From Podarcis bocagei (lineage: Eukaryota), in the NCBI GenBank assembly GCA_964188305.1, contig OZ076900.1: a DNA stretch of 64,000 nt, one strand, 5' to 3'. The number at the start of each line of letters is the position of its first letter. The first letter of the stretch is position 1. Positions 28,846 through 64,000 of this stretch are shown here, piece by piece. The position numbers were made by a program, and so were the translations under genes. Below the pieces are notes generated by a model that worked only from the letters and a program-made list of their open reading frames with translations, was not told where the DNA came from and ran no database searches.

Positions 28846-30369
28846 TCTGCACTGCACATTTAAAGCAGCATTATATCACTTTAAACAGTCATGGTTTCCC
28901 TCAAAAAATCATGAAGACTAGTTCGTTAAGGGTACTGAGAGTTGCCAGGAGACCCCTTTCCCTCACTGAGAGCTACAGTTGGTTGAACAATCAATCCCTC
29001 TTTTCAATAAGCTCTCTGAGGAGAATCAGGGTCTCCTAACAATAATTCTCAGCACCTTTAACAAAATGAGGTTCCCAGCATGGGGACTAAGCTGCCCTGC
29101 CAATATATGGCAACAGTGTTCCAGTCCAGCTACTCTGTGAACCCTGATACCAGCTGCACAGGACATCCACTGTATTTTTTTCATGCATTTGGCACAGTGT
29201 TTAAAAAGGAAATCTACTGCTCAGGACCTATATTTTAGCAGGTAGTAGGAGAGCTAATGTATCTGCATTCCAACAAGTAACAGGAAGAATGGAAGTATGC
29301 TGACTTGTGATGTGACATTTTTGGCGTTTTCCCTCTCCCCTTTTGGTAAGCATTAAATTATATGCATGCTGAGAAAAGCAAATATCCCATGGTGGCTCGA
29401 TGCAGGAGACTTCCTCAATCTGCTAATTATATTCATCTAAAGTTTCTCCAAGGGTGACCTAATCTGAATTGCAATGAAAATGTCAACCTTGAAGCCAGAG
29501 TTAGCATTGCCTGATATTTCAGATGTGTGAAAGAGGTTGATGACAGGGCTGCTCTTTTGACATTAAGCAGAGTTAATTAGACAATGAGAAGTTTGGCAGC
29601 TTCAAAACAAATGCAATCAATATAGCAAAACTGAGAAGCAGCAGAGGAGATGCTGTGGTCACCTACCTGGTCCCTCTGCCCATGTGACTGCAATTCCCTT
29701 TTGTTCCAGTTTTCTAGCCTTTTGTTTATTTCAAAAACCACTCAATTTGGGAGTATTCAGGTGAAGGTCATATTACACAGTGACCCAATAGGCAAAACAT
29801 GTGAAGTGCATTAGTGTTGGTGTTTTAAGAAGAAGAAAAATTAATGGTAATGTCATCTTCAAAAAGTTTAGTAATTATTTGGTACTATATTCACTGGATC
29901 CAAATCAAGCCAATACATCTACTTGTCGTAACTAATGGATCCTACCTAGGGCAATCTTATTTTCCTGTGTGGTCCCAACCGAAGCGGGGGATTTGTAACA
30001 GTCAAAAGGTTAGTTGTTGACAAACACTTGATGCTGAATTATATAACTGGTTCATCCAGTTCAATATTTTCTGCACAGACTGGCAAAGGCTCTTCGGAGT
30101 TTCAGAGAGGAATCTCTACCAGCCCTAGCTGGAGAAGCTAGGGATTCAACCTTCAGCCTTTTGCATGCAAAGCATAAGCTCTACCATTGAATCATGACCC
30201 ATCCCTTAACTCAGGGTAGATAAACATGTTTCATGCCAACTATTTCAGCACCAGGCAGCACTGCCAGTGGTCATCCCAGATATTGTTAGACAACAAGTTC
30301 CCTATCATTGTCCTAATTGGAGCGTGTCCAGCAGAGGGCAACCAGAATAGTGAGGACGTCTGGAAACTA

Positions 30370-30765: not shown

Positions 30766-31685
30766 CAAATTGCAAGCTTAGTTTGATCAGTCATTGTGCA
30801 TGCATTAAAAAATACAAAAAATTTAAACACTTTGCGACAGATGTGGGGAACAGTTGTCTCTCCATGTATTTCTGAGCAGTAACTCCCATCATGCCATACC
30901 TGCTGGGATATTTTAGCAATATCAAGAAAGCCAAATGTTCTCCAGACCAGCTTTACATACCATTGCAAAAGGAAAGTCACAATGCAGGTTCCTGCTATTT
31001 ATTCAAATGGGAGATTCTCTCTCCCTACTCTAAACCTTCAGTTTAAAATAGCCATTTATGTTGAGCACTCTGTTTCTCCCTTGCTTGCCATGCATCTCTA
31101 TGCTCCCTTGGATCTGAACTGCTGTCTTCTGTAGCAAATTTGTCAAAGATTTGGCTTGCTGTTGCAGCCCTCTCATGTGAATATTCCCAGTGGGCTTGGG
31201 TCTTGTTGCTCCTGAAGTCAATGGGAAATAAAACTCTCAAAGACCTCAGAGGATGAAAGTCCCCTGGCTTCTTATTTAAGTAAGAACTCAGGCTCTTTCT
31301 GCTCCAGTGAAGAATACTCCAAACATAAGAAGTAAAGCTACAATCACTACTGGCCATACTCATCTTAGAGAAATGCAGTTCACATTTTGCATCAAACATA
31401 GTGAAAAGGTTCTCAGAAGCAGATGGTCAATAATAAGACAAGCAGATGCCCAGGTCTCTGCAAAACACTGGGGGCACATCTTCAGAATTTATTTAAGGTA
31501 CTTTTACACCACTTTAACTGTCATGGCTTCCCCAAAAGAATCATGGAAACTGTAGCTTGTTAAGGGTGCTGGTAATTTTAGCTGTGTAAGCTGTACAAGT
31601 CCTAACAATTTGCAGCACTCTTAACAGACTACAGCTCCCAGGAATTTTTTAGGGTGGGGAATGCCCTGGCTGTTAAAGTGGCATA

Positions 31686-32226
31686 AGGTAAAGGTAAAGG
31701 GACCGCTGACCATTCGGTCCAGTCGTGGCCGACTCTGGGGTTGCGGTGCTCATCTCACTTTATTGGCCAAGGGAGCCAGTGTCACCATCAGTCAGCTGGG
31801 CATCTTCTGCATCCTAAGCTTCTCATCCTGGTGGATCTTGTCCCCTTAGCTGGTTCCTCCCCCTGCCCCCCCGTACACCTCTACCTAGTGAAGGTAAAGG
31901 GACCGCTGACCATTAGGTCCAGTTGTGACCGACTCTGGGGTTGCGGCGTTCATCTCGCTTTATTGGACGAGGGAGCCAGCATACAGCTTCCGGGTCATGT
32001 GGCCAGCATGACTAAGCCACTTCTGGCAAACCAGAGCAGTGCACAGAAACGCCATTTACCTTCCCGCCGGAGCAGTACCTATTTATCTACTTGCACTTTG
32101 ATGTGCTTTCAAACTGCTAGGTTGGCAGGAGCAGGGACCGAGCAACGGGAGCTCATCCTGTTTCGGGGATTCAAACCGGCAAGTCCTAGGCTCTGTGGTT
32201 TAACCCACAGCGCCACCTGCATCCCC
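31686..32226 (-). mobile_element. Composite Sauria SINE: 3' fragment (31686-31778) + 102-bp captured segment (31787-31888) + full SINE (31891-32226)
   Basis: Both SINE parts have (ACCTTT) tails. A single 14-bp TSD GTTAAAGTGGCATA lies at 31672-31685 and 32227-32240. Confidence 0.88.
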
Positions 32227-32642
32227 GTTAAAGTGGCATAGCACTGCTTTAATTTATGATGTGAGTGTAACCTGGGAGAATTTAGTCTTGGGGACCACAT
32301 ACAGTATATAAATGCTGAAAATATGTCTCTAGTCATTCACAGGTCATCAACACACCAGGAGTCCTTGTTTGTATTTTACAGGTGGGTAGCTACAGTCAAG
32401 TGTGTCCATGGACAGAGAGATTTATGAACCACTGACTTTAAGGGTGGCTTCATCTGTATCAAAGCCTTTGCACCTGTCACCACTTCTTCTTGTTGCTATG
32501 AATTCATCTTTAGCGAGGCCAGAGATTGGTCAGAAACTTAATGAGATCCAGATAGCAGGAGGAGAAGTAATCATGGAGCATCATGCTAATTGTAACTGCA
32601 GCAGTACAGAAGGGTAAGGGAGGAGAAGGGCACTAACTAAAA

Positions 32643-32778
32643 CAGGTGTAGGGAACCTTTGGTCCTCCAGATGCTTATGGACAACTTCCATCAGCTCCAG
32701 CAAGCATAGCCAATGGCCAAGGATGCTGGGAGGCATAGCTCAGCAACAGCTGGAGGACCACATGTTCACCACACCTGC
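32643..32778. mobile_element. Short palindromic hAT-derived MITE
   Basis: CAGGTGTAGGGAACCT...GTTCACCACACCTG with an internal palindrome. Relatives at about 36160-36315, 38224-38360, 41575-41680, 47281-47395, 55160-55240 and 63603-63722. Confidence 0.6.
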
Positions 32779-37200: not shown

Positions 37201-37364
37201 ACAGCAACTTTAAGCTGTGGAGACACCCATGATCTGAGGGAGTTTGCCACTGAATATCAGATGCTTGAAACAAACAGGGACAGGCTACTTTGTGTTTTGC
37301 TCTTAAGCTTCCCAGATGGATGCCGCTGGCCACTCTTTAAAGCAGGACATTGGACTAGGATTAG

Positions 37365-38210
37365 GTAAAGGTAAAGGGACTCCTGACCATTAGGTCCAGT
37401 CATGACCGACTCTGGGGTTGCGACGCTCATCTCGCTTTATTGGCCAAGGGAGCCGGCATACAGCTTCCGGGCCATGTGGCCAGCATGACAAAGCCGCTTC
37501 TGGCAAACCAGAGCAGCGCACGGAAACGCCGTTTACCTTCCCGCTGGAGCGGTACCTATTTATCTACTTGCACTTTGACGTGCTTTCAAACTGCTAGGTT
37601 GGCAGGAGCAGGGACCGAGCAACGGAAGCTCACCCCGTCATGGGCATTCAAACCGCCGACCTTCTGATCGGTCCTAGGCACTGTGGTTTAACCCACAGCG
37701 CCACCCACGTCCCACCTGCTATTTGTTAGGAGGCCCCTATTTCCCTTACAGAGCTAAATTCCCAGCGTTCCTTGGGTAGAGGGATTGATTGTTAAACCAC
37801 TATGGAAACTGCACCTCTGAGAGTGGAATAGGAGTCTTTTCTGAACTCTCAGCACTCTTAACAAACTACAGTTCCCAGGATCCTTTGGAAGAATCCATGA
37901 TTAGCAAAGTAGGACCACACTTTCTGCTCAGTGGCTTATAGCTTCTGGGCATACAGCTTCTGGGTCATGTGGCCAGCATGACTAAGCCACTTCTGGTGAA
38001 CCAGAGCAGTGCACGGAAATGCCGTTTACCTTCCCGCCGGAGCGGTACCTATTTATCTACTTGTACTCTGACATGCTTTCGAACTGCTAGGTTGGCAGGA
38101 GCAGGGACCGAACAACAGGAGCTCACCCCGTCGCGGGGATTCGAACCGCCGACCTTCTGATCGGCAAGTCCTAGGCTCTTTGGTTTAACCCACAGCACCA
38201 CCCACATCCC
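37365..38210 (-). mobile_element. Composite Sauria SINE: full SINE (37365-37713) + about 220-bp foreign segment + 3'-less SINE (about 37935-38210)
   Basis: Single 14-bp TSD TGGACTAG(G/A)ATTAG at 37351-37364 and 38211-38224. Confidence 0.82.
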
Positions 38211-39884
38211 TGGACTAGAATTAGTGATGGGGAATTTGTGGCACTACATGCTTTTGCTAGACCACAACTCCCATCAGCCCTGACCATTGGCTATGCTGGC
38301 TGGGGCTATGGGAATTGGAATTCAGCTGTATTTGGAAGTCTGTAGCTTCTCATCTCTGGCCTGGATAGAACTCATGGTCCAATATAGGGTGCAACTTGAG
38401 GAAAAATAAGCATGCTTTGGTTTCCTTTCCAAATGCTTAATTGCTAAATCAGACTAGATTGCCATAAGCAAGCATCAAATGTACCCTATAATCACACTAA
38501 CCACATGTATGGGCAAATAAGGGCAGCAGCAACAAGCAACCAACAGTGCAACTCTATGTTTACTCAAAATTAAATGCACCTAGTGGGGCTTAGTCCTAGT
38601 GAAAAGAATTGCAGCTCCAGTGATGTTAAAATGCGCAGTTGTGGAGGAGAAATACACCTTGGCATTACCATGTTATTTTTTAATTGGATTAGGGATGCAT
38701 TCAGGAAGATCAAGCGCTGCTGCAACAAGTAATATAATGCATGATATATGCTCCTGAGCATTTAATAAACTGTTCAATTCCAGTCTGATTGGTAGTATTC
38801 AGAAGAGTGAAGATAAAGAACTGCTTCTCTCCAGGCACAATTAATGCATGGAGTTCCATGGCAAATATCGAGAATAGCTTTAAAGGGGGTGAGACAAATG
38901 AGGATTGTGCACTGAGATAGATATATAAAACCTCCAGGTTCAGAGGCAGCATGCCACTGAATAGCAGTGAGGGTGGGCTATTGCTTTTATGCTCAGGAGC
39001 ACATGACTGGTACCCTCTTTTCTGAAGCTTCTAAAGTGGGATCTGCAATAAGATATTGCTAAGTTGAGAGCTCCTGCACTTGTGGTCTGCTCCGTTCCAG
39101 CCAGCCATGCCGCCTCTCAAGATTGCCCATTCCATTTGCCATCTCTCCCCAGTTTTCTATTCCTCTGTCAACTGATGCTTAACATCCTGTGGCCATGGAG
39201 CATTCTCAGCCCTTACTGAGCTGATGAGAAAGGGCACTGCACTGTCTTAAAGTCTCCCCTCCTAAACATGGCAGTACCATGCTCCTTGGATGGTGCCTTG
39301 CAGCCTCCTTCCAGCAGCTCTTCCAGCCCTGCTGGTGCCAAGCGCATTGCTCTGCTTTCCTTTGGACCACATCAGCAAGGTCGAGGGAGGGTGTTGTGTT
39401 GTCTGGGCAGTGCAATACCTCTATATGCACTGCCCAGGCTTGCTCCCCAGGGATGTCACTTCAGTACTTCTACTGCAGTAGTTTGACTTCACTCCCAGAG
39501 CTACACTCTATTGTCTCTTGAGAAAGATGCCAATGTGGCAGTACCTCTTCCTATTTTTTTCAGTAACCTCATTTTGCCTACATACCCATTGTAACCAGAT
39601 ATCACTATTAGTTTATATAATGCTGCTGCACTGGATGACTTTGGGGTTTGGCTGAAAGGGCTCTTATATTCTTAAAATGAGGGTAATTATAAGGGAGAAT
39701 GACGACTTTGGATGCCACAGAAGAGCAGCAAGGGGCCAATTATTTCATCATTAGGGGTGTGTGTTTGTTTAACTGAAAGAAGAAGGAATGGTGTTTATTT
39801 TCCATCTCAGATCGACAAGTGTTTTAAACCAGCCTTGCAAGTGACTCTGGACTTTTATTGAAGGTTTATTCTGCAACATGTTTT

Positions 39885-42826: not shown

Positions 42827-43069
<243 letters not shown>

Positions 43070-43915: not shown

Positions 43916-45568
43916 CATAGCATAAGGCTCCATGGACCTTGGGGACTGGCGGGCTTCTGCAAGGGTTTTATGTCTTGGCTCCAGGTAAGGGTTCAAAAGC
44001 GTTCTGTTTTGGTCCCGGAGCAACACATAGCAGACACACGTTATGCACGGACAAAGTTTTGAACAGCAATGCGCACAGAGGTCTCCCCAACAAAGACTGG
44101 CACGGATTTCGCCTTGGAAGCAGTGAAGGAGAAGGCATTGGGCTGGACCCTTCAAACCGAACTTATTCTTGTAATTTTTATTGTGCGGGGGGGGGGGAGG
44201 AAGTCAATCCCCCTTCCCCCAGAGATGAAGAAACAAAAAGACCATCTGCTTCAGTCGCAAGATGGTCCAAGGTTTAATCCCCAGCCCCATCTCCGGGTAG
44301 GGCTGGAATAAGGACCCTCGAGAGCCACTGCCAGCCAGTGTAGACGGCAGTGAGTCAGATGGACCAATGGCCTGACTTCCAGCGCATCCATGGGATGCAT
44401 TCCAAAGGAGCTTCCTATGTATCGCTACCACCCTTGCCGGTTCCTTCTGCAGCCGTGTAGGAAAGGCTACAGCCGCAAACGGAAGGGGGGCGGGAGGAAC
44501 CCTAACCGAGGTAAAACGGCGCCTTACGCTAAATGAATACAACGCTATTTTTAAACACGGCTTGGCATTTCTCAATGCCCCAGAACCCCAGTGGGAGGGA
44601 ACTTTGCACTCCCACTCGCGGAACAGCCCCCCCCCAAATACATTGGATGCAACGCTCGTTTGATGACATATGCAGGCAGACAAGGAATTGATTATTTTAG
44701 CCATCTGCCTGCACGCTCCCCTCCGTTTGTCCGCTCCAACCGCCCCCACTCTCCCCCCCACCTCGCTTCATGCCAGCCCAACACACACACGAGACACCCG
44801 ATGGATGGTTGTGCCATTTCCGATAGCTTGGTCCTATTAGTCTTGGCACATTTGAGTCCATCAGCTAGACTAACACACCGTCCCGTCCCCCCTCCCCCAC
44901 GTCCAACGAGTCTGCAAACAAGACAATGTTTAGAGGTTTTAGAAGAGCTGCGAGTCACAAAAGCGTACTCCATTAAACGGCAGAGTTACGTGCCTCGCGA
45001 ATCTTGTTGAGTGGGGAGGGAAAGAGAGGGGGAGAGGAAGTTTTGGATTCAGGTGGATTACGGGGGGAAATAGAGTGATGACACGGAGCCTCTCTAGCCC
45101 CCTTTTTGGGGGAAGGGGGGAGATGAGTGAAAGTTTTGCTTTTCCATTGGGTGAGGGCTTACAGATAATTCTTTAACGAGAATAGCACCCCAATCGACGA
45201 TCAAATCAAGAGGTGGGGTCTTTAACATAAATAAATCACGATTTCAAATGAGACTGCAAGTCTCATAGTACTGTTAATAATGGTACCGCAATCCAGACTT
45301 CCGTCCCAGCGCTGCCCACCCTCGACCCATTATTAATCTGTCCAAAGGTATGCAGCGCTGCATTTTAATTTTAAAGCAAATGACAATTTCTTTTAGCGAG
45401 TGCCTGTCTTGGGGGATCCTTGCGGGAGTGGCGGCGGGGTGGGGGAGTGGAAAGAGGAAAGGCAGTGGGGTATACGAGTTTGAGATGAAAAGGTCGACCC
45501 CCCCCCACACACATCGCCACTACTAACATCGACTTCTTTCAATCTTCTTTCAGTATAACCTTGAAGCG

Positions 45569-45620
<52 letters not shown>
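45569..45620. repeat. (AAT)n microsatellite, 35 nt into GRIA3 intron 1
   Basis: Seen directly. Confidence 0.98.
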
Positions 45621-45622
<2 letters not shown>

Positions 45623-45655
45623 TAGGCGCTTTGGAAAGTGATACGAGCTTCTTAC

Positions 45656-45746
45656 CTATACTGATGGTGTTTGGAAAACCTCCGAGCGACTCCCCCAGAA
45701 GCCCCACCAGCATGAGGAAAATAGTTGGAGGCACCGGCTGACCCAT
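45656..45746 (-). CDS. GRIA3: GRIA3 coding exon 1 (signal peptide and start of the amino-terminal domain)
   Basis: Translates to [30 protein letters not shown] plus the first base of Gly, matching the GluA3 N-terminus as recalled ([31 protein letters not shown]). Ends at donor ATAG|GTAAG (phase 1). An in-frame TAG lies upstream of the ATG. Confidence 0.96.
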
Positions 45747-45827
45747 ATTAATATGATTTTTTTCCCTTCTTCTGTTCGTCTAGTTTTCGTTTCGCTCGGT
45801 TCTTCTTCGGCCCCTGCAGTTCAGTCC

Positions 45828-45872: not shown

Positions 45873-46000
45873 NNNNNNNNNNNNNNNNNNNNNNNNNNNN
45901 NNNNNNNNNNNNNNNNNNNNNNNNNNNNNNNNNNNNNNNNNNNNNNNNNNNNNNNNNNNNNNNNNNNNNNNNNNNNNNNNNNNNNNNNNNNNNNNNNNNN
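45873..46000. other. Assembly gap (128 N) in the GRIA3 5' region
   Basis: Run of N. Confidence 0.99.
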
Positions 46001-47975: not shown

Positions 47976-48723
47976 CCTCCCCCACCCTCTGCCTAAATGG
48001 TGAAAGGACATAAATACGCACAGGAACAGCTAGAGACATATCCAATGGAGCTTCTGGAAACAGAATAATAAAAAAGGGAGACTTTAGGGCAAGGAATGTA
48101 AAGACTTTGAAGAAAATGAAGCATAAAAGCTCTTTGCAGAGCTGGCTTGACAGTGTTCTCCTATGCATGTTTATTCAGAATAAGCTGCACTGCTTCTAAT
48201 GGGGTTTATTCCTCAGTGAAGTTTGGTTAGCATTACAGCTTAAACCATTGTGCAACCACCAGTGGTGCTGCATCATGTTATCTGAAAGATGTAAGTTATT
48301 TTATTTTAGGTTATTCACTACCTTTCTATCCCACTTGTTCTCCAAGGTGGCTTTACATACTTAATCCCTTTATTTATTCGCAAAACAACTCTGTGCGGTA
48401 GGTTAGACTGAAAGATGCTGACTGGGCAAGATCACCAGCTGAGCTTCATGGCTGAATCGAGGTGTGAAGCTTGGTCTCCCGGGTCCTAGTTGAATACTCT
48501 AGTAGCATTTGTTTGCAAGAGGAAACTGCCTAATACTGAGTCAGACCAGTTGCCTACTATTGCTATCTATGATGCTGACCGCCAGCAGCTCCCCAGAGTT
48601 TCTTGCCTGGAGATGCCAGGGATTGCCACCTTTCTCATTGAAAAGATCTATCAGTAAATCCTTATCTATACTTTCCAACCACCCCTGGTATATATCATGA
48701 CTAGCAGGCATTGAAAACCTTAG

Positions 48724-49632
48724 TAAAGGTAAAGGGACCCCTGACCATTAGGTCCAGTCGTGACCAACTCTGGGGTTGCGGTGCTCATCTCATTTTATTG
48801 GCCGAGGGAGCCGGCCTACAGCTTCCGGGTCATGTGGCCAGCATGACTAAGCCACTTCTGGCGAACCAGAGCAGAACACGGAAATGCCGTTTACCTTCCC
48901 GCCGGAGCGGTACCTATTTATCTACTTGCTCAGCTGATTCCAACACCTGCAGGACCAATAACCTCCTGAGTAAAATTATAGCTAGAAACCCTGTTTACGT
49001 CCTCCATTAGGTCCAATTGCAGGTTCCCATGCCTCTTGCTCTCAGATACATGAATCAAGTCTGACTCCTGCTCAGTTTCATTTGGAGCTCTCCCTGGCCA
49101 TGTTAATTTGCCTGTACTCTTATCTCCCTTTCCCAATCTATCTATCATTTCTGCCTGGGGGGGGGGACACCATAGGCCTCTCTCTTCCTCAACATTGTTT
49201 TCAGAGGCTGTAGTAGCTATCCACAGATCTCCACTCTCACTTTAATTGGATTATATTGGATTATCTCCCAATTTTGAGGTCCTTGGACCAGCAGCATCAG
49301 AAACACTCTCATGAACATGTTCCATGTTCCTTCTTTTCCTTCTTTTCTGTGTCCTCCAATGCACAGAGGAGGTGCCAGTGTGGCAGATCTTCTTTCTAAC
49401 CTCTTACAGCTACACCTCCACCACCCACCAAGCCATTAGCACTCAAAGCTCTAATTGAGATAACTTTTTTCTCAAGGTCATCATTACATGTTCAGTCATG
49501 TTGAGTAAAAAGCTGTAAAAAGAAGGGACTGAGCAACGGGAACTCACCCCGTTGCGGGGATTTGAACTGCCGGCCTTCTGATTGGCAAGTCCTAGGCTCT
49601 GTGGGTTAACCCACAGCGCTACCTGCGTCCCC
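48724..49632 (-). mobile_element. Composite Sauria SINE split by about 595 bp of foreign sequence (48930-49524)
   Basis: Perfect 13-bp TSD TTGAAAACCTTAG (48711-48723, 49633-49645). The flanks rejoin into a continuous CR1 3' fragment. About 38 bp of SINE is missing at the break. Confidence 0.85.
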
Positions 49633-50212
49633 TTGAAAACCTTAGCCTCCATGAATTTGTCTAATCCCATTTGAAAGCCATCCAAATTGATGACCTCTTC
49701 CATATCTAAGTTGTGTACAGTTTGAGAGTGGTACCCACAGAGTTCCTTCCTGGGTACCATCTTCCAGGCTTCATGCCATGTTGTTATTGCCCTGAATAAT
49801 ATCGTGTCATCCCAAGAACGTGTACTTGGGCTAACTCTGGAAATGCAGGATGGGATAACTGAAGATAAGAGTGCATGAGAGTGGAGGCATCAGAAAATAA
49901 GAAGAGCTGAAAATGGCAATCAGGGAGTGAAGGATCTGGCAGAACTGTAGCTACGGGGGAGGGGGGAGCTAGCTGGGTCCCCCTCCCCCGGGTGAAGCCT
50001 CCAGAGGGATGCCATTGAGGCTCCCAGCCTGTGTGTGTACGCAAATGTATGTGGAGGATGCCAAACTGGATCTGGGAATGAAAAGGGAATGAGAAGACTG
50101 ACCTAGCACCATGCAATGGGCTTTGTGGAAGAACAGCACTTCAGGCTCAGATCACCCTGGTCTAAGACTATTCGCTGCAGCATTCTGGACTCCAGTGAGA
50201 ATGAGCTGTGCA

Positions 50213-55383: not shown

Positions 55384-56589
55384 CCAGATTAGGTATGTGT
55401 AAACTCATTCACCACCTGATTCAGAAATACTGAGCTTTTCTCAACATTTCCTAAGAGGTTTGTCTGAACAGTAACCCCCATATTCACCTAGAAATTTCAT
55501 GTTAGGTGGAATTTGGGTACAAGTTGAAGACTTTATTTATTTATTTTATTTTATTTTGCTGTAGGTGATATGGCAGCTTCTACAGCTAAATGGGGTATGT
55601 TTCTGGACTGCCACAGGGAACCTTTCCCAGAGCTTCATCACACAGCAAAAGTAATTATGTATCAGGGAAGATGTTCAACGGGAGGAATTTTTTGCACATG
55701 GCCTCCCTCTCTTTCCTTGTTTTGTCTCCCTCCCACACATGGCTACTGTTGCCATTGACTATAATTGAAAGCTACTGCTTGCCTGTAGGATAACTCTGCC
55801 TTTGATGACCATATTTCCATACCATCCAGAATTTCACAGATGGAAATAGGTTATCCATGTGTCCTGCTTTGCAGCAGACAGTCCCCCTGTTTGAAGGGCT
55901 GCCAGGGTGGCCATCCTCTGTTTCAAGGTGTCCATTATTTGAAGTGCTATCTGGCCCAAGTTTGGTGTAAAGATGAAGGACCATGAGAATTTAGCATGGC
56001 ATCTAGGGCACAGGGCATCTGTACCCAACTGCATGTTGCTGGTTCCTGCCTGTACTGCTATTGTCTTTGAGAAAGCCAGAACTGTCCAGAGGAAAGCACT
56101 ATGCTGAGAGCACCTTCAGCCCCAGAGCTGTTCTTTAGTTGGAACCCAGCAGTGAATTAGAGGAGCTGGACCAGGTTCTTGGCAGTCTTAGCCTAATGCT
56201 GGTGTTTAGGGCTACACTGAACCTGAGACAGACAGGCAGGATTCCATAGCACCAGGGCTTGTAGAACCAGAGCTGGGATGTTCACAAGCCTTGATGAACC
56301 GAGTGCCTCCCTCCCACACTACTTTGCCATTTCAACAATGCAGGGAGTGCATAGGTGAGAGGCCATGAACAAAGGAGAAAGGCATATTTTTGGGCCAGAG
56401 GGATGGTCCTTTAAGAGGCTGCAGTTTTCCAACAAAGGGGGTGTTGGGAGGGCATATGACAGGCGGAGTGGAGCTTCAGGCTCAAAAGGTTCCAGTTCAC
56501 TTCCAACCCCTTTCAGAGCAAGGTGCTCACTGGGAGCTGCCCTTAGTGCTGCAGCAACTGACTTTACTTGCTCCACCATGCCTGGTGGG

Positions 56590-57007
56590 TAAAGGTAAGT
56601 TACCCCTATCTGTTAGGTCCAGTCATGGAAGACTCTGGGGTTGTGCGCTCATCTCGCTCTATAGGCCAAGGGAGCCAGCGTTTGTCCACAGACAGCTTCT
56701 GGGTCATGTGGCCAGCATGACTAAGCCCCTTCTGGCGAACCAGAGCAGTGCACAGAAACACTGTTTACCTTCCTGCTGGAGCGGTACCTATTTATCTGCT
56801 TGCACTTCATGTGCTTTTCAAACTGCTAGCTGGGACTGAACAATGGGAGCTCACTCCATTGCAGGGATTCGAACCACTGACCTTATGATCGGCAAGCCCT
56901 AGGCTCTGTGGTTTAGACCACAGCGCCACCCGCACCCCCGATTAAAAGGTAAAGGTAAAGGTACCCCTGACTGTTAAGTCCAGTTGCAGATGACTCTGGG
57001 GTTGCAG
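56590..57007 (-). mobile_element. Full Sauria SINE (56590-56938) abutting a second 3'-terminal Sauria fragment (56944-57007)
   Basis: Two (ACCTTT) tails; body as in the other copies. Confidence 0.85.
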
Positions 57008-58393
57008 TTACTCATTGGGATTAGAACAGAATAGGACCAGTCCAGTACCATACTCTGTGTATATAGGAGAATGGAGAAAGGAGGGAGCTTCACAACTGCC
57101 TTAACAACTACCTTCAACTGCAGAAATTATGGGGAGGTGAAGAAATGTTGAATGCATTCTCCCTCGAAAGGCAAAGTGGCTTCAAGTCTGCTAAAACATT
57201 CTTTTGTGATCCTCAAGAATGAAATGGAGTAACACACATGAAGCTTTGTGTGTGAGACAATGAGCAGGAGGGGCAAAGGCTCATAGAAAGCGGGGAGTAG
57301 GGGGCAGAAAATTCTGGTATATATACAGACACATACAGTTTTCCCATTTCTATTTTTTAATTCTATGAGAGGTTTCTGAGTAAGACAATGACCATCCCTT
57401 TCCTTTTGATTCTCTTAAAACTATCTATTGCTAGCAAGGAAGGCTGATTCTATTGCATCTTCCAGCTTATTTTTTCTTTTTCTTTTCTTTTTAAAAAGTA
57501 CTAACCAAAGAGCCTTTCATCTAATCAGAAATATGTCGCTTCTCTATGGTTATTTCCCCATAAAGCAGAGGAGAGACAATTAACTGAACTTTATGCTAAT
57601 GCCTGTGGTTTGATTAGCTACAACCTGATTAATTCCAAAGGAGACCAGGTTATTTTTGCAGATTGTGTGATAGTAGCACTGATAATAACAGAGATGAAAG
57701 GGAATTAAAGAGGGAGCAAATTGTCCAAAGAAGAAGAGAGTGTTAATCTGGCTACGGGTGCAATTGTAGCACTCGGTACTAGGATACTATGTGTCCTGCC
57801 TTACAGAAGACAGTCCTCTATTTGAATAAATCCTCTGTTAGAAGGGCTGCATGGTTCAAGTGCAGCTGAAAGATAAATAACATAAAAAAGGGAGAGCAGG
57901 GATTTCAAATTTGCCCCTCAAGAGTTAGCACATGGACAGCAGACTGAGCAGATGCACATGTCACCTGGTCACAGTCAGACACACTATGGTGAGTTGCAAT
58001 GTGTTTCTGTTAAATTCTAGGGATAACTTGCCAATTTGCATGCATGCACATATATTAGCATATGCAAATTTTATGCTAACCTGTACCCTCTGTTTGTGGT
58101 GGTGCTCTTCCTCTTTTGTGGGAGATGGACAAGTAGACACATTGTTTCATTCACTGAATGTTGTGATGCTGTTCCCAGATGGGAAAACATAGCTAGATAT
58201 GTAAAAATAAGTATATTAATGTGTCTTTTAGCTCAATGTACACACATTTAGAAATGCATACAGTGTGAAAAAATATGTATTTAAAAATACAGTTTGTGAT
58301 AAAATACATATTTGAATAACACTCTCATACTTCTTTTAGAAATGCAGACCAATGCAGAAATGGATTAGAGGAAGCCTATGTATGAACACATGC

Positions 58394-58540
58394 NNNNNNN
58401 NNNNNNNNNNNNNNNNNNNNNNNNNNNNNNNNNNNNNNNNNNNNNNNNNNNNNNNNNNNNNNNNNNNNNNNNNNNNNNNNNNNNNNNNNNNNNNNNNNNN
58501 NNNNNNNNNNNNNNNNNNNNNNNNNNNNNNNNNNNNNNNN
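58394..58540. other. Assembly gap (147 N)
   Basis: Run of N. Confidence 0.99.
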
Positions 58541-61365: not shown

Positions 61366-64000
61366 AGACCATTGGTCCATCCAGCTCTGTCCTACACTGA
61401 CTTTTTAATTTTTTTGGAAATGTTGGGAATTGGGAAAGTCAGTGGATAACTATGTTCTGATCAGCCTAATAGTTGAGGAGGTGTTTATTGGATTAATTCA
61501 TATCAAAATTTATAAAGATTGAATTCCTCAAACATCTTTACTTTATTCCAACAATCTGTTTAGGCAAAATCTGGAATGCTATTTAATTCATTTCCAGTGA
61601 GGGACTTTGAACAAATGTCTACATCACTTAACAGGTTATCTCCAGGAAAGCTTTAGCTGACGACTTGCTGTTTATTATATGAACTGATACTTTTCATAAG
61701 CATTATATTTTTGATGTGCCATGGAAGCCCCATAAGTTGTGCTTCATTTATGCTAGATTTTTTTAGACCAGCAACAGGCTTTTTCACATAAATATGTTCA
61801 TTTCCAATAAATTCTTAAAATTAGAATTAATGAATAGCACAATGCATACAAAATCAGGCTGGACAGTTTCAAAGTCATAATTAACCTCTTTCAGCTGACA
61901 ACCCCTATGAAGCATGCATGCTTATGATATACAGCCTTTAAATCTTAAGGGACATGCATGATATTGAACTGTTGTATCTTAAAATATTGGCAAGTATTCC
62001 AATAAAAACAAATTCCAAGCAAAGCTTTGACTCTGAATACAACATTTAAACTACCATACCTTATCTGTTTCTCTAAATCACCTATGGAAAACCTATGCTG
62101 GAGATATATGCATTTACAGTGAATTCTAGCTGGTGACATGAGGGATATTTAGGAAGCAATCCTATACACAATAAGCTGGTGTAGAGCAAGTCAGTGTACG
62201 TTAAGCCCCCATATAGTTACACCAGATGCAAAGCTCGTTCCGCAGCATGCGGCTGCTGCTCTGCCTAAGTCTGCAGAGAGAAAACAAGGCTTTGAAACAC
62301 CGTTCTATGCCGGGTTGCACATGACCAAGCTGAACAGAGTTAGGATCCAGCCTAAGCCCTTCTTCTCTGGTTCAGGCACACCATGCCTCCAGAATGCCCC
62401 TTTTGGGGGATTCACACAAGCCCTGGCTGAGCTGGAATGTGATACAGGGCAATTTTTTTCCAGCTGAGCAGGAGTTAGGGACTTAACACTAGCTGAGCCT
62501 GGCAGATATGGAAATCAGTTGGCTGGGCATCTTCTGCATCCCAAGCTTCTCATCTTGGTGGATCTTGTCCCCTTAGCTGGTTCCTCCCCCTGCCCCCCCC
62601 CCCGTACACCTCTACCTAGCTCTGGCCAAAGTAGGGAATTGCCAGGGGCAGAAATCAGCCACATCAGAACAGGACCACAGAGGCTCAGCTGTTACAGCTT
62701 GACACTTACAAAGGCTACTGCACCAGGCTTGTTTCCTAACTCTTTCTGGATACTAAACACCATCTTACCTGCACCAGAACGGCATTGGACAGTCAGCCAT
62801 TGATGCTGTGTTGGCCATTTAGGTACAATGGGGTAAATTAAGGATACTGCCCAGCTTAACTTTGAAATTCTTTCCTTTTGTGTTGTTCAGGCAGTTCTTC
62901 CCTGCATTACTTTGATGTACTGTAGTTATTTGCTGTTTAATCTTGTATAATAATTAACTCCAATTGATCCACTGCAGTGCTTTAGGAAAGTGCCTGGACC
63001 TATTAAATTGAACAAAGAATACACCAACACTATCTTTGTTCCAAGCATAATCATGCGACTGAAGGAGAGAGCAGATTAATCTAATGGCATCGCTAGATGG
63101 GACTCTTTGGTGCTGTAAATTTAGGAGTGCTGTTGTAAGGTTTTAAAATATTAAAAAAGCACTATTGTAGAATCTCCCGATTAGCAAGTGCACATTTCCA
63201 TTGTTCTCTGGAGCAGGTGGGGGTGGGGAGTCCACTGCTTCTTTGGCAGATGGGAGGAATAAAGGCAAGAACAGTATGGAATTAAACTCTACAGTCCTTA
63301 AACAGGCCTAACTCCTCTATTCCTGGAATGCAGTTTCAGGTAAAAGAAACGAGAAATAATGCTTGTTCTGATACTGCTCTTGTACTTGCCAAGTGTTGAA
63401 AATCCAAAGAGATGCAGAATTAGAAAGTTCTCTGTATTGCCAGATGCAGTGGGAGGGAGACTGCAGGTTTACTGCAGTGTCTGGTGAGCTTCAGAACCAG
63501 ACCAAGTGCGTCCACTAAGCCATTTGCATGTGCTCTTCTCTGGAATTCGAGCACTCCAAGGAAATTGTTTTTAAGCCCTCTGATGCTGAAGCAGCCTTTA
63601 GCAGAGGTGAGGAACCTCTGACCCTACAGATGTTGTTAGACTTCAACCAGCATGGTCAATGGGCAAGAATGACGAGAGTTGTAGTCCAACAACATTTAGA
63701 GGGCCACAGGTTCCTCATCTCTCTCTTAAAAAAATAGTAAGCTAAGCCCTTCAAAGAAAGGAAACGCAGATGACTCCAGTGTAAAGGATGACACATATGA
63801 CCCCAATTTAGTTCAAGGTGTGACCCATTGTGGCTTACAACCCACCTGCTGAGAACTAGTAATTTAAAGAACACTGGCTGGACTGGCAAAGATCCACCAA
63901 TATTCCATTGCCAGAAATGGGCAGTGGGATGCTTTTAGGCCTATGGGTATATCTCCAGATGTTGTTGGATACAACTTCCATCAGCCCTAGTCACCATGTT

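Follow-up and report, generated by a model that had tools for sequence, protein, structure and literature searches.

Intron 2 of GRIA3 carries a three-part chimeric SINE insertion (31672-32240), and the middle 102 bases of this insertion are a copy of DNA located 30.7 kb away in the same window (the whole stretch of 64,000 nucleotides analysed here). GRIA3 is encoded on the minus strand, with the start codon of exon 1 near 45746 and exon 2 near 42.83-43.0 kb, so the composite falls within intron 2. The source of the copied bases lies upstream of the gene, 16.8 kb from its start codon; the preliminary description of this DNA had put the two in intron 2 and about 16 kb upstream of GRIA3. Probably a sister SINE, or a SINE cDNA, once stood at 62618/62619, where none is present now, and the copied segment was its 3' flank.

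The block is enclosed by a perfect 14-bp TSD, GTTAAAGTGGCATA, with exact plus-strand copies on the left (31672-31685) and on the right (32227-32240). This sequence is present in the 64 kb just twice, the chance expectation for such a repeat being about 0.0005 occurrences. The repeat and its left copy had been recognised in the preliminary description, with the right-hand coordinate off by one and with the adjoining SINE 3' end taken to be 93 nt long instead of 94. Its 7-nt linker, 102-bp non-SINE segment and full-length SINE were all confirmed.

Four parts lie inside the TSD. The leftmost (31686-31779, minus strand) is the 3' end of a Sauria/Squam1 SINE, 94 nt consisting of an (ACCTTT)n-type tail and the LINE-derived region. 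It aligns with the 3' end of each SINE copy in the window, is 90% identical to 31888-31979 and stops after ...GGGAGCCAG. It is followed by the 7-nt filler TGTCACC (31780-31786), which matches neither the SINE nor the source, and by the source-matching segment (31787-31888, plus strand), 102 nt without SINE similarity. The last part (31889-32226) is a full-length Sauria/Squam1 SINE of 338 nt, sense on the minus strand, with a tail of one TTT and one TTC and a 15-nt deletion in its tRNA-like head; the deletion is private to this copy and accounts for the read ends at 32155/32177. The SINE is complete at both ends, as thousands to tens of thousands of genomic SINE reads end matching at 31891 and 32225.

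On the plus strand all parts of the chimera have one orientation and are directly joined, forming one continuous first-strand cDNA within one TSD. The segment/SINE junction has an overlap of 0-1 nt and the other inner junction has the 7-nt filler. A search of the window found only chance-level 9-11-mers, i.e., neither microhomology at the two inner junctions nor a template for the filler. The plus-strand 3' end of the left TSD copy, ...GGCATA, would have served as the primer for reverse transcription.

Both SINE parts end, in the sense direction, in ...CCCTTTACCTT(T/C)AC, that is, in the 3' LINE-derived region and the (ACCTTT)n tail, a tail type listed for Sauria SINEs (PMC13295347, table 4). 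The raw read depth of about 59,000 on the SINE body, compared with about 1.3 on unique flanks, is that of a high-copy family with defined ends. Pol III box-like motifs, TGGCGCTGTGGG and GGTT(T/C)GAATCC, are readable in the SINE, this copy having the 15-nt head deletion; ARAGORN detected no tRNA-like gene anywhere in the window and Rfam gave no match.

The two SINE parts share a rare G (31705 and 31905), found in at most about 3% of genomic SINE reads, about 97% of which have C. They are therefore not derived from two random SINE RNAs. Over 92 nt the SINE ends of the chimera have 9 differing positions. The break of the 94-nt part coincides to the nucleotide with the start of the tail-less SINE in another composite, at 37949; the predicted fold of the whole SINE has no clear domain boundary at nucleotide 93. 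The SINE halves of the individual composites are not each other's closest relatives, the single rare G of the intron-2 composite being the only variant shared in this way. The foreign parts of the two other composites occur only once in the window, so a general pattern of local capture across composites is not shown.

The source copy of the segment (62514-62619, plus strand) is unique sequence. It has the same orientation as the copy in the composite and differs from it by 4 substitutions and by the length of the C-run (7 in the composite, 11 at the source); the two are 96% identical. In a BLAST search within the window it was the sole other match of the segment (E = 1e-39). Both of its flanks are unique within the window, and there is no SINE around 62.5 kb, the nearest one lying at 56589-57008; the preliminary description had reported this match, its differences and the lack of a SINE there in the same terms. 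In each of three species the segment is carried by just one long contig (2.4-2.6 kb, non-SINE context), and no SINE adjoins it in these orthologous contigs.

Over 31787-31872 (86 nt), the composite's copy does not differ from the source in the X13 contig, which comes from the most distant of the sampled species. This puts all four changes on the source lineage, and dating of the capture from the 4 substitutions was dropped for this reason. Rfam searches with the source and the composite gave chance-level matches only (E > 1), the minus-sense RNA fold of the segment was not better than that of shuffled sequences (z = 0.05), and no Pfam domain was found in ten open frames, one of which covers the source.

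Both outer junctions of the composite are spanned by contigs from a different individual of this species (run X1), with 0-1 differences, and also in two related species (runs X13 and X17); at the right TSD copy, contigs of all three runs cross from the SINE head into the unique flank. Both outer junctions, confirmed in three species, speak against the misassembly that the preliminary description had named as a refuting result. Over the two inner junctions there is no contig among the matches listed, and the internal structure is corroborated only indirectly. In X1, the depth of 22.9 at 31865 is made up of 12.1 from the source contig, which has two extra C, and 10.8 from a contig with the C-run length of the composite. 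Contig depth in this run sums to two copies of the segment, with no further piece of at least 87 nt, and this is consistent with a low-copy segment present twice. Runs X13 and X17 have the same depth pattern over the segment as X1.

Raw reads of species D have a mean depth of about 10 over 31798-31854, compared with about 1.3 on unique flanks. This mean is probably inflated by spill-over from the neighbouring ~4000-fold SINE depth: single positions off the SINE edges have depths of 5 (31841) and 3 (31865), corresponding to about 2-4 copies.

Neither an empty intron-2 site nor a plain-SINE intermediate was found in the three species examined, and the insertion is common to all three. The expectation that relatives would have the source segment together with an empty intron-2 site was borne out in its first half only. 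No record was found of a gene with the product of the unique-flank ORF, so no orthologous loci were obtained by that route. As it stands, the insertion is old, fixed and intronic, with no sign of function.

The nick signature of Bov-B and Sauria SINEs is Tn-TA: the TSD starts with TA and a T stretch lies about 10 nt upstream (PMC13295347). The TSD in intron 2 conforms to it, as do those of the two other composites in the window. Its sense context is ...AAATTAAAGCAGTGC|TATGCC, which begins with TA, has C before it and TT (not TTT) at -12/-11. The same signature is present at the right edge of the source, 62618^62619, which reads in the sense direction CTACTTTGGCCAGAGC|TAGGTAGA, with TTT at -12..-10 and then C|TA. 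The motif of TTT at -12..-10 followed by TA occurs at 0.45% of window positions. The copied segment does not include the part upstream of the source nick, so that the signature is explained only by an event that took place on the source DNA itself.

In form, the inner junction CCTA|GTGAAGGTAAAGGG matches a real junction, the one at 48723 (CCTTA|GTAAAGGTAAAGGG), and the family-wide letter at 31890 is A in genomic SINE reads. Judged by this form, segment and SINE seem to meet at a true insertion junction. A sister SINE at 62618/62619 would have had a TSD beginning with TAGGTAGAGG.

Read in the minus sense, the left edge of the source coincides with the opening T of the nearest downstream TTT. 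We considered this T-run as a Pol III stop and downgraded it, since the SINE itself holds five TTT runs, which makes TTT a poor stop, and a TTTT is not reached until 334 nt downstream. The end of the copy at the first TTT is weakly consistent with a Pol III stop. Both the nick-signature match and the T-run match were noticed post hoc, and the mechanism suggested below is built on such coincidences of sequence.

Together, the nick signature at the source and the insertion-like junction suggest that the segment and the full SINE moved as one unit. If so, one template switch is enough instead of two, and neither a Pol II transcript from upstream of GRIA3 nor a chromatin loop is required. The most plausible reading, still a tentative one, is a chimeric Sauria/Squam1 retrocopy made in one TPRT by the Bov-B (RTE-clade) machinery, which acquired the flank via a read-through transcript and an RT jump. 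The endonuclease would nick the plus strand after ...GGCATA (31685), and the RT would copy the tail and the LINE-derived region of a SINE RNA (94 nt). Where the LINE-derived region meets the SINE body it would quit this template, add 7 untemplated nt and jump to the free 3' end of a read-through transcript, made by Pol III from a SINE of the same rare subfamily that was situated at that time in minus orientation at 62618^62619, 30.7 kb away. The RT would then copy 102-105 nt of the flank of this sister SINE and the whole SINE to its 5' end, and the 14-bp TSD would result from a normal second nick. In the genomes sampled, the allele with the sister SINE at 62.5 kb would no longer be present.

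The break of the donor at the same nucleotide as in the 37949 composite supports site-specific RT switching. Several considerations weigh on the other side, among them the poor quality of TTT as a stop, the post hoc character of the matches and the lack of inner-junction contigs among the matches listed. As no SINE stands at 62618/62619 in the window or in the contigs of three species, the sister copy is hypothetical. The SINE ends differ at 9 of 92 positions, yet the segment is identical over 86 nt, which is awkward if the SINE ends began identical. An RNA route also gives no ready reason for the proximity of 30.7 kb, which counts against the origin of the segment as a read-through flank: by chance it would be expected at about 4e-5 for a genome of 1.5 Gb (size assumed), and such proximity seems unlikely unless daughters land near the mother copy or local RNA is favoured. 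That Sauria SINEs generally carry 3' flank through a Bov-B RT jump, with daughters landing within tens of kb and with the other composites produced by the same process, appears doubtful.

The main rival to a read-through origin is a two-step history of DNA repair, which we regard as rather unlikely. A plain SINE would have inserted into intron 2, and a later break inside it, at nucleotide 93/94 from the tail, would have been repaired from the sister SINE at 62618/62619 by strand invasion into this nearly identical copy, synthesis via its 3' part, an overshoot of ~102 nt into its flank and end joining with 7 filler nt. The observed order of parts and the single TSD would follow, and the nick signature at the source and the genuine-looking junction are covered; the same orientation and the shared rare G also fit, as repair needs near-identical partners. 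Repair gives the best account of the 30.7-kb distance, ectopic repair favouring nearby donors, and a 7-nt filler is typical of end joining. However, the now-absent sister SINE is needed here too, and the break at the LINE-derived boundary, at the same nucleotide as in the 37949 composite, becomes a coincidence at about 1-3%. The lack of a plain-SINE intermediate and the X1-like depth pattern over the segment in X13 and X17 also speak against repair, and its scars would presumably be rarer than RT chimeras in a family of >40,000 copies. In the preliminary description the RT had instead passed from one SINE RNA to a second by way of unrelated DNA or nascent RNA from nearby, with no SINE at the source. 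This accommodates the single TSD, the cDNA order, the filler and the beginning of the second SINE at its tail; the template strand required is the minus strand, which is GRIA3 sense, and double template jumps are documented (PMC2104539). It is nevertheless improbable: two switches and two independent SINE RNAs with a shared 3% variant are required, and the nick signature in the uncopied flank would be fortuitous, at 0.45% of positions or, with tail pairing accounting for the TA alone, about 8%. Neither an RNA family nor an RNA structure was found at the source. One TPRT event with template switching stays the best class of explanation. Two switches via unrelated DNA or RNA are less favoured; the source nick signature and the insertion-like junction suggest that the segment probably was not a free piece of upstream DNA or RNA. 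A germline contact or a minus-strand transcript from upstream of GRIA3 is not needed and becomes a less likely candidate reading.

Events that followed an ordinary insertion and did not involve a sister SINE are less probable still. In one variant, a FoSTeS/MMBIR switch at a plain SINE could have doubled its first 93 nt and brought in 102 nt from a template 30.7 kb distant; in the other, a 5'-truncated chimera could have arrived as a second insertion at a regenerated nick site, directly adjacent to an older SINE. Replication switching typically uses local templates, the SINE tail recreates a T-run and TA target at its own 3' junction, and tandem duplications inside squamate SINEs are known (PMC10702118). 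Against both variants, the start of the duplicated block falls no more than 2 nt from the SINE/TSD boundary, which has a chance probability of about 1%, and the source nick signature is left unexplained; neither junction has the microhomology expected of FoSTeS/MMBIR, and a second insertion would lack a TSD of its own and have the rare G in common only fortuitously. Had two nick-primed reactions run concurrently in one cell at sites 30.7 kb apart, with a full SINE cDNA primed at 62618, the source nick signature and the junction would be explained without any lost allele, and so would the local origin and the filler. The second strand at intron 2 would copy this cDNA and then the source plus strand before switching to the aborted 94-nt cDNA, and the intermediate at the source would be removed. 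We consider this very improbable, as two simultaneous nicks within 31 kb and an unwound source strand of at least 100 nt are required and neither the left boundary of the segment nor the break at the LINE-derived boundary is accounted for; we know of no precedent for chimera formation in this way. The least probable reading is that the segment belongs to a repeat family, that the composite was retrocopied from a master locus and its nearby match is coincidental, or that the assembly is in error. The mean depth of about 10 over 31798-31854 in species D and the lack of inner-junction contigs among the matches listed point in this direction. They are countered by depths of 5 (31841) and 3 (31865) off the SINE edges, by a single non-composite piece of at least 87 nt per contig run, by the presence of both outer junctions in three species and by the 96% identity of two copies within one 64-kb window (E = 1e-39).

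Tripartite chimeras within one 14-bp TSD have been documented and site-specific switching is known for LINE RT chimeras (PMC2104539); U6/L1 and other L1-RNA chimeras have likewise been attributed to template switching by the LINE RT (10.1101/2025.02.02.635956). The intron-2 insertion resembles the Buzdin/Gogvadze-type chimeras (PMC2104539) in having several retrocopied parts, joined head to tail in one orientation and enclosed by one short TSD, which in the Magnaporthe tripartite element is likewise 14 bp long. Further likenesses are a 3'-most part that is the cognate template of the RT, a specific donor switch site and a SINE as a possible partner. In contrast to those chimeras, the RT here is of the RTE clade (Bov-B) and works with a SINE of stringent tail specificity instead of L1 or MGL, the middle part derives not from an abundant cellular RNA but from low-copy, non-genic DNA at a distance of 30.7 kb, and the first and last parts belong to the same element.

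In 3' transduction by L1 and SVA, unique DNA immediately 3' of the source element moves along with it and can reveal the position of the source. If the segment was the flank of a sister SINE, the insertion is similar in that a unique 3' flank was carried together with the element. It differs in that the carrier would be a Pol III SINE and that what comes after the flank is filler and a second SINE 3' end rather than a new poly(A) tail. The source locus has no element next to the flank, either in the window or in the source contigs of three species, and since no SINE is present from 62619 onward, we do not class the chimera as a 3' transduction.

Ectopic DNA insertions are also known at breaks made by L1 ORF2p (10.1101/2024.12.14.628481). 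Templated break insertions (SDSA overshoot, FoSTeS/MMBIR) similarly consist of a short same-orientation copy of nearby DNA with an adjoining duplicated stretch and filler at one junction, whereas the intron-2 insertion has no microhomology, its duplicated block starts at the very 3' end of the element and its TSD is that of a canonical retrotransposon. SINE-derived satellites (PMC10702118) involve the same SINE family (Squam1 = Sauria) and the doubling of a part at one locus; here, in contrast, 109 nt of non-SINE sequence separate the 3' parts, of which there are two copies and no array.

Overall, the insertion is an RT chimera of a known kind in an unusual local form, seen at a single locus. 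L1-type and fungal LINEs are known to give rise to chimeric retrocopies when their RT switches templates; for the Bov-B/Sauria SINE pair, we found no such report among the searched papers mentioning Sauria SINE. If the segment indeed was the flank of a sister SINE, composites of this kind would mark vanished active source copies, as 3' transductions do for L1, and the long-standing question of which SINE copies are active would become directly testable in squamates. Such flank carriage would also constitute a route of small-scale DNA shuffling in lizard genomes. Should the 30.7-kb distance prove recurrent, it would point to local re-insertion or to repair-driven exchange between neighbouring SINE copies.

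The chimeric SINE insertion at 31672-32240 (the composite) is enclosed by one perfect 14-bp target-site duplication (TSD), GTTAAAGTGGCATA, found at 31672-31685 and 32227-32240. The 14-mer does not occur a third time in the window (about 0.0005 expected by chance). Between the TSD copies lie the 3' end of a Sauria/Squam1 SINE (31686-31779, 94 nt, antisense on the + strand), an unmatched filler TGTCACC (31780-31786, 7 nt), a 102-nt segment (31787-31888) and a full SINE (31889-32226), again antisense on the + strand. The segment matches 62514-62619, the source, 30.7 kb away and in the same orientation (E = 1e-39), and has no other match within the window. Both the single TSD around the block and the copying of the source, with four substitutions and a different poly-C (a C-run of 7 versus 11 at the source), had been claimed in the preliminary description and hold. 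Given the antisense orientation of the SINE, the + strand of 31686-32226 is the first-strand cDNA in the order of synthesis, primed from ...GGCATA-3'. A frame of 166 codons (184 stop to stop), open on the + strand at 31741-32241, spans the whole composite; consisting of antisense SINE sequence, it is most likely a chance frame.

The region 31000-32700 was compared with contigs from a second individual of the same species (flanks diverging by about 0.3% from the window) and from two relatives (about 1.4% and, for the most distant species sampled, about 2.8%), as well as with raw reads from a third relative. Both outer junctions of the composite are crossed by contigs in all three contig runs, therefore the insertion is real and predates the splits of the three species sampled. 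No contig across the inner junctions is found among the matches listed for these runs. An empty site with one TSD copy had been expected in relatives; the insertion is instead present in every contig run examined.

Each contig run has one long contig (2.4-2.6 kb) that carries the segment in the non-SINE context of the source locus, and no further piece of at least 87 nt matching the segment in any of them. In the other individual of the species, depth at 31865 is 22.9, made up of 12.1 from the source contig (two extra C) and 10.8 from a contig whose C-run is as long as the composite's, which adds up to two segment copies. The low copy number expected for local capture agrees with this depth, but is less sharply bounded in the raw reads of the third relative: single-position depths of 5 (31841) and 3 (31865), at about 1.3 per copy, give about 2-4 copies, and the mean in the bin 31798-31854 is about 10, above the single-position values. 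We attribute the excess in this bin to spill-over from the 4000-fold depth of the adjoining SINE; a few more copies may exist in that species. The four substitutions cluster within 37 nt (31793-31829). Over 31787-31872 the most distant species has a source contig without a single difference from the composite's copy, so all four arose at the source, in the lineage of the window's species and one relative, and they are therefore uninformative on reverse transcriptase (RT) errors or the age of capture. The C-run of the source varies: the window has 11 C, and other samples exceed the composite's 7 by two or three.

GRIA3 lies on the minus strand of the window. Its exon 1 (frame 45396-45779) matches glutamate receptor 3 residues 1-32, including the signal peptide, with the start codon near 45746, and exon 2 (frame 42827-43069) matches residues 30-83 (E about 1e-29); both were confirmed through matches to solved GluA3 chains. 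The composite is therefore located in intron 2, sense to the gene, an orientation common to six of the window's seven SINE pieces. Its insertion site falls within the right arm of a ~190-bp palindromic repeat (31480-31690) with 30-nt inverted arms, 77% complementary, and a raw-read depth about 40-250x that of unique flanks; related pieces occur at 28858-29081 and in the foreign part of the composite at 37.7 kb. The source is 16.8 kb upstream of the GRIA3 start codon. Its flanks are single-copy within the window and a window search found no SINE within 5 kb, so its description as free of a surrounding SINE and kept in orientation was correct. Sequence is masked as N over 45873-46000, a short way upstream of exon 1, and over 58394-58540.

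The element is a Sauria/Squam1 SINE. This type has an (ACCTTT)n tail and a 3' part formed by a LINE-derived region in common with Bov-B (PMC13295347, PMC10702118). In raw reads of the related species the SINE body reaches about 59,000-fold depth against about 1.3 on unique flanks. The family-wide ends, 31891 and 32225, show the long copy to be complete; its tRNA-like head was recognised by neither ARAGORN nor Rfam. About 97% of the aligned genomic SINE reads have C where both SINE parts of the composite have G (31705 and 31905), which places the two parts in a single rare subfamily and perhaps derives them from the same gene. At 31988, about the break point of the composite's 3' part, some 6,700 raw reads diverge family-wide into ...GGCGTTTGTCCACAGACAGCT; they mark a SINE subfamily that carries ~10 additional nt there, as does the copy at 56589.

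Two other composites are found in the window. The one at 37351-38224 has one TSD, TGGACTAG[G/A]ATTAG (13/14 positions matching), and consists of a full SINE, foreign DNA of about 222 nt with a palindromic repeat, a SINE-like stutter of 12-14 nt (ATAGCTTCTGGG | CATACAGCTTCTGGG) and a SINE from which the 3' 93 nt are missing; nowhere else in the window does the foreign part recur in full. The 94-nt part of our composite breaks at the exact nucleotide where the tail-less SINE of this composite at 37949 starts, which we take to be the putative boundary of the LINE-derived region. In the composite at 48711-49645, with a perfect 13-bp TSD TTGAAAACCTTAG (13/13), 209 nt of SINE 3' end and 112 nt of 5' end are split by 591 nt that have no second copy in the window, and the SINE body lacks about 40 nt. 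At 56589-57018, a full SINE (56589-56946) is followed by a few bases and a separate 5'-truncated SINE tail with LINE-derived region of about 70 nt.

In sense (the SINE reading direction), the insertion site of the composite reads ...AAATTAAAGCAGTGC|TATGCC, the TSD beginning with TA and T's lying 11-12 nt upstream. TSDs of Sauria SINEs start with TA and have upstream T's (PMC13295347), and the same pattern is seen at both other composites, so the TSD is a genuine Bov-B/Sauria target. The right boundary of the source, CTACTTTGGCCAGAGC|TAGGTAGA, has TTT at -12..-10 and C at -1, then TA; "TA with TTT at -13..-9" holds for 0.45% of window positions. The T-run and the C are not explained by a cDNA end pairing with the tail of the SINE, because both are in flank that was not copied; only an event on the source DNA would account for them. 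The junction between segment and full SINE, CCTA|GTGAAGGTAAAGGG, resembles in form a true insertion junction (such as CCTTA|GTAAAGGTAAAGGG at 48723); the family-wide letter at 31890 is A. Together, the nick signature and this junction, spotted after the fact at a single locus, indicate that a SINE, or at least nick-primed SINE cDNA, once stood in minus orientation at 62618^62619. On this reading, segment and full SINE would form a single unit, this sister SINE with its 3' flank.

We favour, tentatively, a template switch onto a read-through transcript of the sister SINE. The RT would start on a SINE tail, copy the LINE-derived region and quit the template at its boundary, append 7 nt, jump onto the free 3' end of the transcript and copy the flank and then the whole SINE, with a normal TSD on integration. 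Only one switch is required, and other LINE RTs are known for site-specific switching and single-TSD chimeras (PMC2104539), with which this route would fit. Read in minus sense, the last base of the copy is the initial T of the first TTT downstream of the segment/SINE junction. As a Pol III stop this is weak: a TTT begins at 3% of positions and five lie within the SINE itself, making it a poor stop, and the first TTTT is 334 nt away. Two further weak points are that three species lack the sister copy today and that the distance of 30.7 kb is unaccounted for (chance about 4e-5 at an assumed 1.5-Gb genome).

Source locality is best accounted for by the main rival, in which a break in a plain intron-2 SINE was repaired from the neighbouring sister SINE, synthesis overshooting into the flank before end joining; this leaves the position of the break unexplained, and we regard it as unlikely. 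The preliminary description had the RT pass from SINE RNA to local DNA or nascent RNA and on to a second SINE RNA. RT switching itself is retained here, but a local piece serving as free DNA or RNA is rather more doubtful than repair, given that it leaves the source nick signature to chance and requires two SINE RNAs with the same 3% variant. Replication switching, or a second insertion at a regenerated nick, does not explain that signature either and is improbable. Two concurrent nicks would leave the left end of the segment and the break position unaccounted for; we know of no precedent and give this little credence. Least probable of all is a repeat family, master locus or assembly artefact, which is at odds with the depth and contig evidence.

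The composite is of a known kind, a template-switch chimeric retrocopy with a flavour of 3' transduction. As 3' transduction proper it was rejected, the defining contiguity at a source locus not being found. Judging by titles and abstracts, none of the 21 papers mentioning the Sauria SINE in the library searched deals with such composites. Compared with known template-switch chimeras, what is new is the machinery, an RTE-clade RT with its stringent SINE partner, the use of the same element twice around a low-copy piece, and a local origin, pointing to a sister copy that would have since vanished from the region upstream of GRIA3.
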